A stretch of DNA of 64,000 nt from Rhodosorus marinus CCMP1338 (taxonomy: Eukaryota > Plantae > Rhodophyta). Location: assembly GCA_029953675.1 (NCBI GenBank), contig JAMWBK010000005.1, positions 1,612,001 through 1,676,000 on the forward strand. Direction: 5' to 3'. The notes under the pieces are model-generated. The model ran no database searches. It saw nothing but the letters and a program-made list of their open reading frames with translations, and had not been told where the DNA came from. The translations under genes were made by a program, and so were the position numbers. This document shows, piece after piece, positions 1 through 64,000 of the stretch (positions are counted from its first letter, which is position 1; the number at the start of each line of letters is the position of its first letter).

Positions 1-418
1 GTACACTGCCATCTGCTCGCTGGAAGGGAGCTTCAAGGTCCATGCTGATCGACTTCCTTAGGTTCTCTGCGAAGGCCGCGTTGAGCGTAAACGAGATGAC
101 ACTTCCGATAGCTTCCCTTTCCATGATCCTCAGATCGAGCAGCTGTGTGCTCGCGGTTTGGTACGATCTGTCCGACTCAAAAGACGCCCGAGCAACGTCG
201 TAGGGGATCGGACTCGAATCGGAGTTGGGCAGGTACAGCAACCGCATCAGCAGATGTCGACAAGCCGGCGGAATCGCTCTAAGCAAACCACAAACGGCAA
301 AACGAGATTTGTACAACAGCCTCAACTCCTTTGATTCCCATCCGAGCAGCTCCTCCACGATCGGACCGGGGAGTTGACCCCCACCTTCTCGGCTACCCCC
401 CCTGCTCTCGGATCCCAT
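1..418 (-). CDS. TFB2: TFIIH core subunit p52/Tfb2, N-terminal part (gene runs off the left edge)
   Basis: Manual translation of the minus strand from ATG at 418 is open to base 1, so it is missing from the ORF track: MGSESRGG...ELRLLYKSRFAVCGLLRAIPPACRHLLMRLLYL...FTLNAAFAENLRKSI. This matches the Tfb2/GTF2H4 N-terminal pattern LY.S...C..I.R.LPP.....MRLL...LN..F..NLR. Confidence 0.7.
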   Translation of the reverse strand, partial: MGSESRGGSREGGGQLPGPIVEELLGWESKELRLLYKSRFAVCGLLRAIPPACRHLLMRLLYLPNSDSSPIPYDVARASFESDRSYQTASTQLLDLRIMEREAIGSVISFTLNAAFAENLRKSISMDLEAPFQRADGSV

Positions 419-1026
419 CACATGAAAAAGACAAAAGGAAACGCACCGGTGTCGCCAGGAACTGAGCTCCCCGACTACTGCCCTAAGATATCAATCTATC
501 TCAATCTCCTCCCATACTTGTCAACCCCACCTGCGTTCTTTTCAAATGCCGTCGTCGGCAACCACCCCTGTTGACGGGACAAGCCGACGCCAACACGAGT
601 CTGCTCTTCCAGAACCTCGCACATTTCGTTACCGCGTCGAACTTCTAGTACGATAATAGTAAATACTAGCGTTTGTACTAATATGTAGTTCAGATTGCTC
701 GTCGCTGGAATAGATTGAATTTTGGTAAATTTGAAATTCGGCAGCTGTCCTTAAGTGAATCCCTCAAAATAATTTTATTATATGAATACATAGTTAGGGC
801 CTTTAATTTATTTCGGAATTATGATTTCAACGTTCACCAACACAGATTACTTAAATATTACGTAAAATCTATAATAGTGTATGGATTTCTGAGAAAAAGA
901 GTAGTGGAGAGTAATTTGTTAAGTAATTCATGGTCAAAATTGGCTTCGTTTGCTGTTCGTGGACGTGTAGTTGGCCACTTGCGGCGACGTTCAAGGAGCG
1001 AGAAGAAATCCGTTTAGACTTGGCAG

Positions 1027-1169
1027 GGTCGGAGCAATAAAAGCTTTCGTAACTTGGGAGGCTGAGTGAGGTGCGCTAGGTGAACTTTTCGCGGCAAACG
1101 GGGTTGGTAGTAGTACTGCCGGTGAGCGGAGTTCAAAGTACAATAAGAGCACCTCAGCACCGCTTTTTT
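1027..1169 (+). ncRNA. candidate structured small RNA (long hairpin followed by T6)
   Basis: Nested complementarity: tgaggtgc (1067-1074)/gcacctca (1149-1156), tgaactt/gagttca, ggca/tgcc, then TTTTTT at 1164-1169. Identity not established. Confidence 0.25.
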
Positions 1170-3086
1170 GGCGAGCGCTTTTCTTGGACTTCAGTTAAAT
1201 TCAAGCAACGAGTACACGCGTTTCGTAGCTTCTGGCGTGCTGGTTAAGGCCAATTGATGACTCCTCATTACAATTTCGCCAACTTTTTCCGGAGGCTGAG
1301 ATCGCGCCCGAGGAACGCAATCTGTAGATGAAAGAGGGGTAGTTTGTTCGCTGGAAACCTAAATTCCGGGAAAACAAATTGCTTAAGAAAATAGGATTCC
1401 TGCAACAGCCGCAGGAGCAGTCGGAGCTCCACGGCCGCGGGTAGTAGCCTCGTTCTACTCAGGTATTATCACAAAAGTGCGGTCAAAAGAAGAACGCCAA
1501 CATTCCGACGAATACTATACAACTTCCCACAGAGAGCTACTTAGGTCTAGACCACCAGGTCACCAGCATCACCCTGCATATATCCCCCTCCATCCCCTAC
1601 AAAAAATCAAAACCCTCGCACCGGATTTTTGCAAAGAGTAACCCACTGCGGCCACATTGAGAAGCCACAGTCCAGCAACCACATCTGAACAAACACGCAA
1701 TCGTCCTTGTCCATTTAACGCTATTAGAATCTGAGCCAAATGTACGACGACCAACCCCCAGGGGTGCGAAGTCCTTCCCATTATTCACAAAAAAACAAAA
1801 AAACTTCGCCCCTGTGCTAGGTTCCAAGCTTGTTTTTGATAAGAATTTAACCCCTTCCGTATCGATGAATGGAAATTCTCGAATGAACTTGGATATCCCC
1901 ACCCTCACCCCATAAAAAAAAAAGCAAAATGTGGAACCTACTCAGATATCTACACTCTCCGTAACTGATTAGTAGACTACTCAGGGTTTCTTATTGCAAA
2001 AAAACAAATACGACGACAGAAAAGAAACGCGGAGAAGGACGAGGTGCTGACACATCATATCCGAGGGCATATTTGAAATCAAAATCAACTGAAAATTTTG
2101 GAAGAAGTAGTCCAGCAAATGGGAGTGTCGCGCGCAATCGCCGCCCCAACATTTACTTTCGTTTTGAGCCAAACGATTAGCTGGGTTTTGATTGAACATA
2201 TTTAAAATATAGTAAAATTATATTTTACGGCCAATAGATAACGCTCAAGAATATTTAACCCAACGAAGAACAGTTTAACGGGAAAAATGATTGAATACTT
2301 GTTTTCTTAGCTGTAGTTGGTTATATTGGGTGGTTATTGATTGAGACTTTGGCGAATGAGAACGACGATGATCCTATCCTCGCGGAATGAATTCGTTTTC
2401 TCAGTTAGCTCTCGGAAAGTGAATGCACTTGTGGTGCAACGACGATTCTCCTCTGAGCTCGACAGGATGTTTTGATACTTCCGCGTTCCCAGGGCCTTCC
2501 CCTCGTATGGATGGTCAGCCCAGGAGGGGGCGTTCCGAGCAAGGCGACAATGCAAGTGAGTCCTCTTGGCCTCTGTCCTTCCCCCCCTCCACCGCCCTCG
2601 CCCATCTCGCATTCACATAGATACATCTGTCCGCAGTTTCAGGGTGACCAACAACCGGGGCGTCCTCTTACCGCAGTTCCCGAGTCCTCGGATGAGATCT
2701 TCGAGCAAGGAGATAGTGGCGCGACGGCTTAGGACCTTCGCGCATAGCAAGTTGAAGCTTCTATACAAGTGCTATTGCGGTAGATGCCGCTCTCAGCGCC
2801 TTAGACGAAACGACGAGGTACGGGAATTTTCTCGAAGAAAAATTCCTCTTAAAATAGTAGTAATAAACAATTGTTTGTTTTAGCGGCGAAGGGTTTTAGT
2901 ACAGGCGACAACGTCGGGGCTTTTGAATATGAGGGAACGGCCGGTTGAGAGCGAGGGGAGTTTGGTGTAGAAGATCTAGGTTCTAATATGAGGGCCCGAG
3001 AGCGAGGAAGTCTGTTAGAACGGAACTTGTGAAGAGGAGGATTTGTCTTAGACGTGCCTGAGGTTGGGGCTAGGTTGAAACCGGAT

Positions 3087-6000
3087 ATGGACCGAGGGCA
3101 GATTGCCCATATGACGGCGTTGTTGATGAAGTCAGCTTCTTCGTTGCCGTTAACACCGCGCGGCTCGATGTCGCTAATGAATTCAGAGGATACCTCATCG
3201 ACGGAAACGGAAGAGTGCTGTTCGCAGCTTTCCGCGCAAAAGGTTTGCAACTCCCGTTCATCCAAAACTGGGGTCCTCGGAAGCGAAACTTCATGGTGTT
3301 CAAAGCTCTCTCGAGTCACTGAAGGTTGCTCCATCTCTGTAATCTTTGTTCAGAGGGTTCAGGACCGAAACTACTTAAAGGGGGGTACAGCAGCGGCTGA
3401 GGATAGTACGGAGGCTCGACTTGCATCCGCGAACCGCACCACGACGGCACGAACCATCGCTGCTAAAGGTTCACACGCTGCAGCGGTGGCTGTAAAGCTA
3501 GAACCGCAAGTTGATGAGACAATTACCCCTCCAGCAGACGCTTCGTCAGCTCTGTTCCCAAAGGCCTGTGAGTATTGTGGGGTTTTACCATCTTCGTACG
3601 GAAAGTCGAAAAGATTCTGTTCCTCTAGTTGTGCCCACTCGTACTCAGCGAATGTGGGCAAGGCTTCTCGATTGGGCTTGGTGCCGTCAGGTATTGCATT
3701 TTTCAAATCGACCTCTCGAGACTTGCAACTAATTCCGCCGCTGAGATATATGCTTTGGTGAAGCGACAGGGTCCAAGAAGAAGAGACAGAAGAAACCGAA
3801 TTCCCCTCAAAATTGTGAAGTATGCGGAAAAGCGACGAACATGTTTTCGTCCTCTGGAAGGTTCTGTTCATCGTCCTGTTCACACAAGTATTCCGGCAGC
3901 TTCTCTGCGCGGAAATCAATAGCAAAGAAGTATGCCCCTAGCCGTTGCTTTGTCCTCTCCGTGACCGACACTCTTCGTCTAACGCCTTGCTGTACTTCTG
4001 TTCCAAACGTTTCAGAAAATTACGGAAGCCATCCAGTCCCGCAGAAAATGCGGAGGAGAAAAGCGCTGGTGCAGACACTAGACCATCTGTACCTGGTCCA
4101 CAGCCAAACCCGGTGGCAGCTACTCTGTCCTCTCCCCCGCCCCTGTCTGCTGCCCCTTCTTCTTTGGCAGCTGAGCCACCTGCTCTACCTCAGCGCGGGC
4201 CAAATAAGACTCTCAAACGCAAGGGCGTTTCGACTCAAAAGACGAGGTTGGTGGCTACTCTAGATCCTGAGCGGGACTCGAATCTGGAAGCCCGGTAAGG
4301 CGAACACTCGTTTGGACATGGATTTCGATTCACACTTGTATAAGGGGAGCCAACCAACTTAGTTCATTCTTCTTTTCAACTTTGTGATTGTCTTGGCAGG
4401 GAAAACTATTGCGAACTGAGAGCAGACTATATGTACCCATTCGCGGAAGCTGATGTGAAACTCTCAGCCCTTGAGAATGAATCTTGTGTGACTTGTGGCT
4501 CAGGGGGGACTTTACTTGTGTGTAGCCGATGCCCGAGAGCAGTTCATTTGCCTTGCGTCGATCCACCGTTATATACGGTACCTGACGGTGACTGGTATTG
4601 CCGGTCGTGTTCAGCTCCGCAGACGTCCAAGGAGCAGTCGGAAGGTGATCTACCCCAGCAGTTTTATTGCCCCTTTTTGCCTTCCTTGTTGTGCAGTTTC
4701 TTTCACAAGATTACGGTGTCCTGATTAACGAAGACCGTTACGCTTTCCCCATCAGGTCAACTCTTTGACGAGCTGATTCAGGCAGCTGCTCAGCGCAATC
4801 CACTTTGCATGGCTCTGGACGCTGATCGCCATACGGACTACACTGAGAAGCACGAAGGGGACTGGTTTCGCTGCGATGCATGCCGATCGTGGAGACCAGT
4901 TGATTCCAACATCCTCAGCGAGATGTTGGAAACCGGCCTCGAGTGCAATGATATGTTTTGGCTGAGCGCATGCGTTGAACAAGGCTGTGAGGCAGGAAGC
5001 AGCCGTTCTGCTGCAAAGTTCGCGAGAAGGAGCAGGAAGAGATACCGCGATGAACTGATGAGGGAGTTCGGGGCGGATGTACGTTTCAATATATATTTAT
5101 ATTGATTTTGCGCCCAAGAGATCTTTGAGCTGACTATGCTCGATTCGTCGCTCTGCCGTTAGGATTATGCATTGTTTAGGGAACAGGAGAAACCCCACAT
5201 TGCTCAAGTGCCAGTACCGACGCATGTTGAGTTGCCGCTTAAGAAATCTCCCGAAAAAGTGCAGACTGAGAAGACACCGGAGAGTTTGTTTCGTACCGAA
5301 GGATATCGTGCATCGCAAGTTTCTTCGGAAACTGTGGGAGCGGAGAAGATACTTGGGACTTCAAGCCATGTGGAAGTACAGGCTGCAACTACGGGAGGTT
5401 CCGAAACAGGTCAACCGAAGAAGTTACGATCTGATCCAATTTTCGCAATAGCGCCTGCGACTAAGAGTAGTTCGGAAACCGTCCAACCAAGAAAGCTACG
5501 ATCTGATTTAAGTTCGGTCGTATCTTCTTCAACGAAGACTTCCCCGGAGACAAAGCAACCGACAGATTCAACTGCTGTCGGAATGCGCTCTGCTACGGAC
5601 ACCTTGTCGGAATCAGTGCAAAAAGGACAGAGTTTCAAGAGCAAGATCAAAAATGCAAATCCGGAGACCACTGGACAGAGAACCGATCACTCTCCGGCGC
5701 CTAAAGCCCTCCAATGGTTGCCACCTGGAATTTCTGGTGTGTCTAGTGGACCACCACTACTACCTGAGGGAGTGGTCGGCGTGCTACCGTCCGAAACGCC
5801 GACACATCAATTCAATACTGACGGTGCTCAGAGCCCTGCTTCCCGGCAACCGGCAGTGAAGATTACCCAGGTTCAAGAGTCAGCAGGCCAACCGCAGATG
5901 CAAGCTGGGAAAATGGCATTTCCCGCCGTAAAACCGTGCTCAGAGGTCGCGAAGGCTTCAACCATCACTCCCGTGCAGAGCTCGACTACGGGATCGCAGA

Positions 6001-52315: not shown

Positions 52316-52774
52316 ATGAGGATCCTTCGAAAGCTCGCAGAGTTTGTAGAGCGCGACTGTAGACTAGCCTTCGAAGATGGGTACAGGTTTGGGGTACAGG
52401 AAGCTACGAAGATGATCTCCGCTGTTTCAATGGGCAATACCAACCTGCTGGTTCAGCCACGCGTTGTGAAGCGTCAACAAAAAAAACCATCTGGCACGAA
52501 CCAAGATAAGCGTAGCTCGTCAGGCCGAGGATTGGAAGGCGAAGAGAATACGCAAGTATCCGTTGACAAGAAGGTAGTCAGTCTCCACGTGAATTATCCA
52601 AGACCCTCAATACATGATAAAGCCGGTGTATACAAGAGAATTAAATCCGGAGGAGTCGAGTCCGTTCAGCTCCTTGCAGTGAAAGAGACAAAGAAAGAAA
52701 TTAAGAATGTGAATGCACGTCCTAATGAAACCAAGCAGGGACGGGTGTTCGAAGCTCAGGCAGCAAGCGGCTAG
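52316..52774 (+). CDS. hypothetical 152 aa protein with N-terminal AFxxGYRxGVxE module and basic tail
   Basis: Intronless ORF from ATG 52316 (MRILRKLAEFVERDCRLAFEDGYRFGVQEATK); its N-terminus aligns with the convergent neighbour. Confidence 0.6.
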   Translation: MRILRKLAEFVERDCRLAFEDGYRFGVQEATKMISAVSMGNTNLLVQPRVVKRQQKKPSGTNQDKRSSSGRGLEGEENTQVSVDKKVVSLHVNYPRPSIHDKAGVYKRIKSGGVESVQLLAVKETKKEIKNVNARPNETKQGRVFEAQAASG

Positions 52775-52982
52775 GTTTCATTTGAGGCGCTCGACCAAGT
52801 CTCTTGTCCTAATTAAAATTTAGACCCGGGATGTGGTTTTGGGTCTTTAGTCGAAAAGGCGTAGAACGATCTTAAGCCTAGTTCTCGCTCCGTATGCACT
52901 TGACTATTGGGTTTTGACCCTGCTGACTCGATTGAAGCTTGTACTCTTGAGGCCTCGAGGTCTCCATAGCTTGTGTTGAAAT

Positions 52983-53603
52983 CTATCTCGTGGCTGGAAA
53001 CAAGTTCTGGGCTGAACCTGATAAATACTGGTGTACTTGCAAATGGTCCTTTCGTCGCATGGGGACTAAATTGAACCACGAATTTGGCCCACCAAATGCT
53101 AGAGGAATTACGTGATGCCAGTCCGGCGTCGTCATCCGTAGACTAGACGTTGCCGTCATCACCCTCCAGTTTTGAATGAGTTGCGTTCGCTGGTCTTGAA
53201 ACTCCTTGCGTGCAAAAGCCAACCTTGTGTGGTCCAGCTTCCTGAAAGGCATTTCCTCCTTGAAATAAAACTTGAGGAGGTCACGCTGATCCTTCTTCAT
53301 GGGCGACAGTTCACGGAGGAACATCAGGTATACATCGAACGTGCCTCCACGTGCTTTCAATCCATCCATCGAATTCACCTGCGAAACTCGTAGAACTTTT
53401 TCACGCTTTCCGGACTCAGCAATTCTCCGCCCAGAATACTCCCCTACCTTGCCAATATCATACACTCCTCCCAGATTCCGCCTAAACTCCTCCACACCAC
53501 ACCTGTAGCCATTGTTGAACGCTCTAGTAGCGTCCCCATCCGCAACCTCCCCGACGTTCTTCACCAAGGACCGAATCACTGCTGACCCCGTCTTCGCATG
53601 CAT
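52983..53603 (-). CDS. HNH endonuclease-domain protein (206 aa) with N-terminal AFxxGYRxGVxE module
   Basis: Intronless ORF from ATG 53603. The C-terminal DWHHVIPLAFGGPNSWFNLVPMRRKDHLQVH has the HH..P...GG.N...NL......H..H pattern of HNH nucleases. Confidence 0.75.
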   Translation of the reverse strand: MHAKTGSAVIRSLVKNVGEVADGDATRAFNNGYRCGVEEFRRNLGGVYDIGKVGEYSGRRIAESGKREKVLRVSQVNSMDGLKARGGTFDVYLMFLRELSPMKKDQRDLLKFYFKEEMPFRKLDHTRLAFARKEFQDQRTQLIQNWRVMTATSSLRMTTPDWHHVIPLAFGGPNSWFNLVPMRRKDHLQVHQYLSGSAQNLFPATR

Positions 53604-62233: not shown

Positions 62234-64000
62234 ATGGGCAAGCACATATTTACGATTCTTCCAAATGTGGATTACAATGAGCACACGAAACTTCCCCCGA
62301 CGAAGGAGTTCTGCAAACTGGTCCACGCGACCTTGAAGGCGATCGACGAGAGCACGGAGACCGTGTCCTTTATCACGTCGAGGAGGATTACTGCGGATCT
62401 TGCCGAGTATGTTTTGAACTGTGATGGGCATTACAAGCTTGATATCACGAGACACTCGACGCTGCGCACCGCTTTGGCTCGACCCGAGTTGTCGGTTGCG
62501 AGGGTGTGTGAGTTCGTCCTTTTCACTGGAGAGAATCCTCTTGAAGCGGATGACGACGCAGCTTGGCAGAAGTTCTGCATGAGAGCGGTATGTAATTTTG
62601 CACCCAACTTTAACCTTTTTGTGCTTGTGAAGCGCTACTAAACGATTCTTGGTGGGATTCCAGGTCAGTATGGGTAGCTCTAAAGCAACCCTTTACCAGC
62701 TGAAAGACGACCCATTCCGCTTCCCAGGGTTTGACAAGGAGGCTTTCTTAAAAAAATGGCAAGCTCCTTCAACACTGTATGTGGTACCCGGCGAGCAGGG
62801 AGTCGACTCTGTGATGCCCGCTCCCAGCACGATCAAGCGGCTCACGAAGACCATGGATCTCCTCTGTGAGGATGACGATGCAGTTGCAGTATTTGTGGGA
62901 GGAAAGAGCGGTGACGCCGTAGTCAGTGAAGCTATGTTGATGTGCGGTTATATGGAATCGACGCACCAAAGACCGAATAGGAATATTCCCGCCAGACTAG
63001 CAGTGATTACTAGGGGAAGGACGCTCGAGGTAGGTCCCAAATCTTTTCGTTCGATTGGTTTTTGGGTGCGTCATTTCCTCCGTGTCAGGGGGTCCCTAAC
63101 GAGACTATGCACAACAAACACCAGGAGAAAGCGGAGCTATCACAAGATTTTATTAGCACGGTTGGTCGAAACGCGAAGGAAACGTACCTCATCGTTAACG
63201 GCGATCAAGTCACAGAGATTAAGGAGATGGCGGCTCTCGCCCAATACGACCTGGTTGAAGAAGTGCGTACAATTCGTAGCCTTCTTTTTGCATCATAGAT
63301 TGAGAACAACAGTACCTAAACCTGTTTGAGCACCATGTTCATCAGGCCGACGAGGACGGGGAGGACGAGGACCCGCTTGAAGCTCTGCGCGCAAAGTATC
63401 CGACAGTTCAAGAGCCAGCCGAGGACGAGGCAAACCCGGCGGAGGTTTCGGAAGCTGCGGAAGCGACAGATGCTGCTGATGAAACTGGGGCTCCGGAGGC
63501 AATCGATGCTCTTGAGGTGGTTGTCGCCGCAGAAGTGTTGGACGCCCCAGATGTGCTGGACGCCCCAGATGTGCTGGACGCCCCAGATGTGCTGGACGCC
63601 CCAGATGTGCTGGACGCCCCAGATGTGCTGGACGCCCCAGATGTGCTGGACGCCCCAGATGTGCTGGACGCCCCAGATGTGCTGGACGCTCCAAAGGTGG
63701 TCGACGCACCAGAGGTCGTGGACGCACCAGAGGTCGTGGACGCACCAGAGGTCGTGGACGCACCAGAGGTCGTGGACGCTCCAGAGGTCGTGGACGCTCC
63801 AGAGGTCGTGGACGCTCCAGAGGTCGTGGACGCTCCAGAGGTCGTGGACGCTCCAGAGGCAGTGGACGCTCCAGAGGTCGTGGACGCTCCAGAGGCAGTG
63901 GACGCTCCAGAGGTCGTGGATGGTCCAGAGGTGGTGGATGGTCCAGAGGTGGTGGACACTCCAGAGGAGGCTGGCGCTCCAGAGGCGGACGATGCCCTTG
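62234..64000 (+). CDS. uncharacterised multi-exon protein with acidic hexapeptide repeats (runs off the right edge)
   Basis: ORFs 62234, 62649 and 63062 join by GT-AG introns. The last intron (63263-63312) is phase 0 into an open frame YLNLFEHH...(DAPDVL)n(DAPEVV)n that reaches the window end without a stop. Confidence 0.7.
63532..63963 (+). repeat. 18 bp coding minisatellite, about 24 units in two sub-blocks
   Basis: gatgtgctggacgcccca repeated, then gaggtcgtggacgc(a/t)cca repeated. Confidence 0.95.

Follow-up and report, generated by a model that had tools for sequence, protein, structure and literature searches.

What keeps a nuclease of a bacterial toxin type side by side with an orphan gene in the nucleus of an alga? 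The question is raised by two convergent, intronless genes, here called A and B, in the nuclear DNA of Rhodosorus marinus (Stylonematophyceae; assembly GCA_029953675.1, contig JAMWBK010000005.1), which we analysed in a stretch of 64,000 nucleotides referred to below as the window. An earlier note on this DNA had proposed that the two proteins have an N-terminal module in common, that B carries an HNH nuclease, and that together they form a nuclease with a cognate regulator or antidote, as in a toxin-antidote, selfish or defence cassette. Sequence, fold and catalytic residues place B in the HNH superfamily and in the clade of Rhs2-CT, a bacterial toxin. As judged from sequence comparison, the N-terminal modules of A and B, of ~35 amino acids (aa), are homologous, and the convergent arrangement recurs in a distant organism. 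A nuclease with a cognate partner is a reasonable reading, since the solved member of the clade of B is a potent DNase toxin, although we found no specific sign of selfish or defensive behaviour.

Gene A (52316..52774, + strand; ATG at 52316, TAG stop at 52772-52774) encodes a protein of 152 aa (P0002) with an isoelectric point (pI) of ~10, and gene B (53603..52983, - strand; ATG at 53603, stop at 52985-52983) a protein of 206 aa (P0001). Both are supported by an open reading frame (ORF) and by a gene call. The geometry claimed earlier was exact: the two 27-aa strings that had been compared lie at 52322-52402 (+) and 53567-53487 (-) and align without gaps with 10/27 identities, and the stop codons face each other across a spacer of 208 bp (52775-52982). 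The absence of introns, said to set the pair apart from its neighbours, was also borne out. The gene calls for A and B are single-exon, whereas the five of six neighbour models that are complete all contain introns, as they span more DNA than their products require.

The nuclease domain of B occupies residues 86-206 (52986..53348, -) and consists of a helix bundle followed by a beta-beta-alpha-metal finger of the Rhs2-CT type; its HNH catalytic core (residues 161-195; 53019..53123, -) holds W162-H163-H164, N174, N178, H187 and H191. The Pfam HNH family (PF01844) matched residues 163-191 with 16.6 bits, below its gathering cut-off of 21.4, so that the HNH call made earlier does not stand on Pfam but on PDB and fold matches. 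Of the 22 members of the B family, 17 reach an E of 0.1 or better against PF01844, the lowest value being 1.6e-14. The best PDB sequence match of B alone was Rhs2-CT (8cm0_A, E 5.5e-6), the single entry that stood out, and a profile of four algal B proteins matched the same chain at E 4.3e-10 over profile positions 111-170, reaching beyond the HNH core into the preceding helices. In the AlphaFold2 (AF2) model of B, built with 22 homologues, residues 80-206 are confident, with a predicted local distance difference test (pLDDT) value mostly >90. The model comprises a helical bundle and then the finger, with strands at 161-164 and 179-182 and a helix at 184-195 (pLDDT >90). Foldseek placed Rhs2-CT (9t38 and 8cm0) at the top for this model, with a probability of 1.00 and target-normalised template modelling (TM) scores of 0.62-0.66 over ~100 residues at ~25% sequence identity, while other HNH structures followed at E 4.5e-2 or worse, four orders of magnitude behind.

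In the 22-member family alignment, H163, H164, G172, N174, N178, P181, H187 and H191 fall in invariant or near-invariant columns, and the catalytic residues of B are kept in 4/4 algal orthologues. Given this full set of conserved residues, B is expected to be an active nuclease. Rhs2-CT itself is the C-terminal toxin of a type VI Rhs effector of Serratia marcescens, a metal-dependent DNase that kills bacteria and yeast (yeast at low induction) and requires an immunity protein (bioRxiv 10.1101/2025.10.28.685041). We did not find a hydrophobic leader or signal peptide, an Rhs part or a repeat domain in the 206-aa sequence of B or in its Pfam search. B is probably, as its sequence indicates, an intracellular and active HNH DNase; it is not a polymorphic toxin, because it has no trafficking part and no gene from a known immunity family accompanies it on the same strand.

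When B was searched exhaustively with phmmer against 1.84 billion representatives, 22 matches were returned, most of them small bacterial proteins with signal peptides, encoded amid housekeeping genes of Gram-negative bacteria. One relative (P0023) is the C-terminal part of an Rhs-type protein; the ORF that comes next is immunity-like and overlaps it by 4 nt. Three matches group tightly with B: P0005, the N-terminus of a B orthologue from R. marinus MMETSP0011 (P0029, also from MMETSP, is likewise an orthologue fragment); P0004, of 186 aa, from an MMETSP transcript (L003, 3726-4286); and P0006, of 195 aa, from Logan run SRR22824290. P0004 and P0006 have in common with B not only the nuclease domain, at E 1e-16 to 1e-20 as against 1e-9 or worse for the bacterial relatives, but also the N-terminal module. 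The eukaryotic members of the A and B families that came up in the exhaustive and indexed searches are limited to the few described here, and a scan of metagenomes for further eukaryotic copies gave generic HNH cores only. The same was true of a BFVD fold search and an IMG/VR scan, with which we had considered a viral origin.

Several observations on the wider B family stand apart from the algal pair. P0010, P0013 and P0021, JGI metagenome proteins of low-complexity, ciliate-like sequence, carry two tandem helical-plus-HNH units and are annotated as McrA at their source, which suggests that the nuclease clade expanded separately in other eukaryotes. The bacterial stand-alone members (L021, 6001-6519; L023, 6001-6957; L007, 2703-3167) have signal peptides and no obvious immunity gene, and lie next to genes for MurJ, CsrA, FliE, BamA or NrdR and, in one case, a resolvase. 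Instead of forming classical toxin-immunity pairs, these proteins may act as secreted nucleases. The N-terminal module of P0004 (residues 10-46) weakly matches phrog_23611 (E 0.0023, 19 bits), a 71-position phage family to which no function has been assigned; other family members do not.

Gene A, in turn, is an orphan, and its family counts three known members. When 5.8 billion clusters were searched by index, with the single sequence and with a three-member profile, three proteins beyond A were found, namely the Rhodosorus orthologues P0003/P0028, with 72% identity, and P0026 (193 aa; BLASTP E 2e-10). In the alignment of P0026 with A, the N-terminal module of P0026 has an insertion of 8 residues, the middle is unalignable and a C-terminal stretch is conserved. 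The earlier note had described the part of A beyond the module as a basic low-complexity tail. It is indeed basic (pI 10), but it is made up of a fast-evolving linker (residues 38-79; 52427..52552, +), itself basic and predicted to be disordered, and of a conserved C-terminal domain of ~70 aa (residues 80-152; 52553..52771, +) with a net charge of +7. This domain aligns to residues 108-164 of P0026 with the motif YPxP..VYxxIxxGGV..ET, and the same stretch was picked up by tblastx of the distant locus L004 against the window. The pI of the A family ranges from 9.4 to 10.0, and the C-terminal domain carries a net charge of +7 to +10 in both divergent orthologues.

We found no match of A in Pfam, NCBIfam, PADLOC or PDB and no recognisable DNA-binding domain in the Pfam and PDB searches; PHROGs gave one stray match (14.6 bits, E 0.054). 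The AF2 model of A is poor (pLDDT 49.6); it shows residues 2-39 as a helix, 40-78 as disordered and 80-129 as beta strands, and the linker falls below a pLDDT of 50 (residues 35-77). From its GG and hydrophobic spacing we had suspected that the C-terminal domain might be a dead HNH paralogue, but hhalign aligned the N-terminal modules alone and tblastx in all frames detected nothing else. Nor could A be placed as a known immunity or defence protein, since it matched no such family and is unlike the immunity-like ORF beside P0023.

The module that joins the two families lies at residues 3-37 of A (52322..52426, +) and residues 13-47 of B (53463..53567, -) and is predicted to form an amphipathic helix, with the core AFxxGYxxGVxE in A. 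It stands at the extreme N-terminus in both proteins, where AF2 predicts, at low confidence, helices at residues 2-39 of A and 7-43 of B. BLASTP of A against B gave 11/35 identities at E 2e-4 for this one comparison, which is modest given how many ORF pairs could be scanned. We therefore built a hidden Markov model (HMM) that drew on nothing but the N-termini of four B-family proteins, and ran it over the window and related loci, cut in six frames into 1895 segments from stop to stop. The best non-self match was the A orthologue of a second R. marinus lineage, L001, with 25.3 bits (E 1e-6). It was followed by A itself with 21.2 bits (E 2e-5), and the next-best match among the 1895 segments reached 9.5 bits, leaving a gap of ~12 bits. 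In agreement with this, a comparison of the two families with hhalign aligned 30 columns at E 3.6e-5 and nothing outside the N-terminal modules, and A matched the module of the distant B orthologue P0006 with 12/31 identities (E 5e-4).

At the DNA level we did not detect an inverted repeat between the 5' ends of A and B, and the modules are about half identical. This indicates that the duplication is old, and we rejected a recent duplication or gene conversion of the 5' ends. The resemblance to FliH/Yae1-type helices suggested earlier did not hold up, as neither the full proteins nor the isolated modules matched Pfam at E up to 10 and the module profile found no such chain in PDB. What the module has in common with the helices of Yae1-Lto1 (deca-GX3) and FliH is small residues four apart, which could permit close helix-helix packing; it differs from them in having one GxxxG rather than a GX3 run, and in matching no family. 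The single GxxxG (GYRFG, GYRCG or GLESG) has been lost in two of seven sequences, P0004 and P0026. Both N-termini are rich in acidic residues, unlike organellar presequences.

The earlier note had asked whether copies recur as linked pairs, and they do. In L001 (Logan SRR32518362), the A orthologue (304-762) faces a convergent B orthologue, which is a fragment, from 971 onward, with a gap of again 208 bp; the proteins of this locus match MMETSP sequences of R. marinus at >95% identity. Two further runs (L004/L005 and L006) place the B-like P0006 and the A-like P0026 tail to tail, 84 bp apart. As the proteins of this distant pair are 33-34% (B) and 23-28% (A) identical to those of the window, the arrangement has outlived most of the sequence similarity. 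The short flank available in L004 had no match anywhere in the window. At this locus, the window and L001 differ by a synonymous divergence (dS) of ~0.3 and the proteins are 72-79% identical, so that strains named R. marinus are quite divergent.

We used this divergence (dS about 0.26-0.32) to compare the ratio of nonsynonymous to synonymous change (dN/dS) between the window and L001. In A, the ratio was 0.25 for the N-terminal module (residues 1-40), 1.13 for the linker (41-85) and 0.38 for the C-terminal domain (86-152). In B, it was 1.49 for the linker (45-85) and 0.20 for the nuclease domain (86-206). The B linker (residues 48-85; 53349..53462, -) is also gapped among orthologues and has a pLDDT <50, and neither the length nor the sequence of the A linker is kept in P0026. 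Thus A and B share a three-part build, in which a constrained N-terminal module and a constrained C-terminal domain are separated by a neutral linker.

The spacer (52775..52982) is of equal length in L001 and 85% identical, compared with 67.5% for the region upstream of A and a coding dS of ~0.3; being more conserved than both synonymous sites and that region, it is constrained. This presumably reflects closely apposed or overlapping 3' untranslated regions. We did not find an Rfam match that would point to a structured RNA in the spacer, and the two sequences offered no covariation. Orthologues of both genes come from MMETSP transcriptomes of Rhodosorus marinus (P0028 for A; the fragments P0005 and P0029 for B), and the orthologues are therefore transcribed. 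The GC content (0.48-0.51) and third-position GC content (GC3; 0.49-0.57) of A and B are like those of neighbouring exons, and we found no flanking terminal or direct repeats, tandem repeats or mobile-element genes at the pair. On these grounds we rejected a mobile element or a recent horizontal transfer; any transfer from bacteria must be old.

How could these features fit together? From the comparisons above we infer that B has DNase activity and a bacterial origin, that A and B associate, and that inhibition is the direction of control. An ancestor of these algae would most likely have acquired the nuclease domain from bacteria. Since B has neither a signal peptide nor an Rhs part, the part that delivers the bacterial proteins, be it a signal peptide or an Rhs cage, would have given way in the algal lineage to the N-terminal helix of ~35 aa and a floppy linker. 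Gene A would go back to an old duplication that copied only the 5' part of a B-like gene, or B to one in the opposite direction. The helix that they have in common, with its GxxxG-like face, would join A and B, either as a heterodimer or through a common docking site, and A would be a co-inherited control subunit, most likely a safety catch that restrains the nuclease until it is needed. Rearrangements that part a dangerous nuclease from its control would then be selected against, which would account for the tail-to-tail order persisting between such distant lineages.

In eukaryotes the order of genes is normally lost with time, and the conserved linkage suggests that A controls B. We tentatively prefer the reading in which the two proteins form one unit joined via the shared helix, with A controlling B, although we give it slightly less than an even chance. 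Restraint is favoured as the form of control because a free intracellular DNase of a clade whose member Rhs2-CT kills yeast at low induction would be dangerous, and because the one force known to hold gene pairs of this kind together is selection that acts when a poison is parted from its control. Several points weigh against this reading. The pair is known from three lineages, and the P0004 transcript ends 179 nt past the stop, before any partner could show. Within the distant pair, the likeness between the modules of P0026 and P0006 has fallen below significance, P0026 is missed by the B-only HMM, and the AF2 confidence of the module is low in both A and B. Moreover, A is strongly basic (pI ~10, with its C-terminal domain at net +7 to +10), whereas classical DNase immunity proteins are acidic. 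It is unlike any immunity family, the immunity-like ORF adjacent to P0023 or any chain of a PDB set in which 8cm0 and 9t38, both complexes with RhsI2, are listed. The precedent of RhsI2 shows, on the other hand, that inhibition need not mimic DNA (bioRxiv 10.1101/2025.10.28.685041).

The same data leave room for a nuclease of two subunits, in which A, paired with B via the helix, would be a nucleic-acid-binding subunit that targets or activates it and brings it to its substrate, which could be damaged nuclear DNA, organellar DNA such as mitochondrial minicircles, or foreign DNA. We regard this as possible but doubtful. The very basic C-terminal domain in both divergent A orthologues fits a nucleic-acid binder better than an acidic inhibitor, and the ordinary purifying selection and host-like composition resemble those of housekeeping genes. 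DNA-damage-response genes are neighbours in two species (DNA-PKcs in the window, PARP in L003), and the Stylonematophyceae have unusual minicircular mitogenomes (PMC10250338). Yet the study of those minicircles makes no mention of such a nuclease (PMC10250338), the acidic N-termini do not resemble organellar presequences, A has no recognisable DNA-binding domain, and the gene neighbourhood may be coincidence. Mere functional partners are, furthermore, not usually kept adjacent for so long in eukaryotes. If instead B were a poison and A its antidote, the pair could be a selfish cassette that persists by killing progeny or cells from which it has been lost, or an anti-viral suicide cassette triggered by infection. 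The toxin clade of the nuclease, the tight and conserved linkage, the lack of introns among intron-bearing neighbours and the very narrow phyletic distribution would all agree with this, and the common N-terminal module recalls wtf-like poison and antidote pairs that co-assemble through shared sequence. However, drive elements as a rule show rapid turnover and a variable number of copies, whereas this pair is single-copy in the window, has no flanking repeats or mobile-element genes, and keeps an identical arrangement and spacer length across a dS of ~0.3, with purifying rather than diversifying selection on its functional parts. Together with its host-like composition and the lack of a match to known defence families in PADLOC, this tends to speak, as far as one genome and a few short contigs show, against the selfish or defensive behaviour that the earlier note had suggested, and we consider such a cassette unlikely. 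Equally unlikely is its more specific form, a nuclear toxin-antidote or suicide module of new design, in which an active DNase and an unrelated basic antidote with a duplicated GxxxG helix are encoded convergently across a conserved spacer; to our knowledge, such a module would be the first described in red algae.

It is also conceivable, though we hold it to be less probable still, that A and B have no functional coupling and are the relic of a local inverted partial duplication, the helix being baggage or a signal for a third partner or a compartment. The N-terminal module is all that A and B have in common, their C-terminal domains being unrelated in every frame; its similarity has decayed in the distant pair, and short intergenic distances may slow the break-up of neighbours in compact genomes. 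A mere relic is nevertheless hard to reconcile with a convergent order that survived divergence to about 25-35% protein identity, with a module that is under purifying selection in A (dN/dS 0.25) and kept in every B orthologue, or with a spacer more conserved than synonymous sites. That the N-terminal similarity is a chance or compositional likeness of two amphipathic helices whose genes are adjacent by coincidence seems to us very improbable. The module is short, and a pairwise E of 2e-4 is modest for the many ORF pairs of a 64-kb window, but the B-only HMM puts the A proteins first, 12 bits above noise, the profile-profile comparison is significant (E 3.6e-5), and A matches P0006 across species. 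Moreover, A and B each carry the module right at the N-terminal end, and other genomes show the pairing again.

Among described systems, the closest to B is Rhs2-CT with its immunity protein RhsI2, from the type VI secretion system of Serratia marcescens Db10 (PDB 8cm0, 9t38). Residues ~86-206 of B have the same atypical HNH fold including the preceding helices, the HH...N...H...H catalytic set is common to both, and in both a neighbouring second gene is the candidate controller. The differences concern delivery and partner. B is a nuclear algal gene without a PAAR/Rhs cage or secretion signal, and A is convergent rather than same-strand and downstream. A is moreover basic, has an N-terminal helix in common with its nuclease and is similar in sequence to no chain of the PDB set searched, in which the RhsI2 complex entries are listed. 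The Sec-exported bacterial members of the clade (P0007, P0009, P0011/P0030, P0012, P0015, P0016 and others) have the same domain limits as B and the same motifs (F..Y...L, R..F......L...W and HHIIPL..GGPN.WWNL.P....H..IH), but they have signal peptides and no obvious partner gene, where the algal proteins carry the N-terminal module instead. The colicin E-type DNases with their Im proteins likewise combine an HNH DNase with a small adjacent cognate gene, and the colicin DNase is a weak fold and Pfam match to the B family. Im proteins are, however, acidic four-helix proteins encoded on the same strand that share no domain with the toxin, whereas A is basic and has no sequence similarity to PDB chains, colicin immunity proteins included. 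In wtf of Schizosaccharomyces and Spok of Podospora, poison and antidote are tightly linked, and the wtf products share sequence and co-assemble. The wtf products are isoforms from one membrane-protein gene, though, and Spok is a single protein. Such genes occur in many copies, evolve fast and differ from strain to strain, and nothing of the kind is seen for the algal pair.

The capture of bacterial HNH toxin domains by eukaryotes is already known (PMC3482391), and transfers are established there for other clades, namely teneurin Tox-GHH, HNH-CIDE and NGO1392 (Zhang et al, 2012; PMC3482391). As in those cases, a toxin-type HNH is fixed in a nuclear genome, but B belongs to another HNH clade and red algae are not among the eukaryotic groups named in the passages of that survey considered here (PMC3482391). 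The teneurin version is described there as inactive (PMC3482391), whereas the catalytic residues of B are intact, and no domestication with a linked partner sharing a module appears in the same passages (PMC3482391). Our literature searches found no description of an intact captured HNH toxin domain with a partner that shares a duplicated N-terminal helix. We likewise know of none whose partner gene shares a helix with it.

Toxin domains that entered eukaryotes from bacterial conflict systems mostly occur by themselves or in inactive form. B, by its sequence, would be an apparently active DNase, from a clade with one member proven to kill yeast, that resides in an algal nucleus, without an export signal and with a long-kept orphan partner. 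If A controls B, the pair would show in compact and experimentally tractable form how a bacterial toxin can be tamed by a eukaryote, and the duplicated docking helix would be a novel link between toxin and controller. If A instead targets B, the pair would point to a DNA-processing activity not yet known, in a lineage with very unusual organelle genomes.

Finally, we looked at the surroundings of the pair. The intron-bearing neighbours include a PCI-domain gene divergent from B and a ribosomal L12 gene. The DNA-PKcs gene, with a product of 3998 aa, runs from ~42983 or earlier to 50785 (+) and ends ~1.5 kb upstream of A. In L003, an ankyrin-WGR-PARP gene occupies 2-3307, and the B-like P0004 begins 419 bp downstream of it on the same MMETSP transcript. 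Towards the end of the window, at 63535-63960, an ORF contains ~20 tandem copies of a 21-nt unit that encode acidic heptads, DAPDVLD and then DAPEVVD; this repeat region has a GC content of 0.63-0.64 and continues to the window end.

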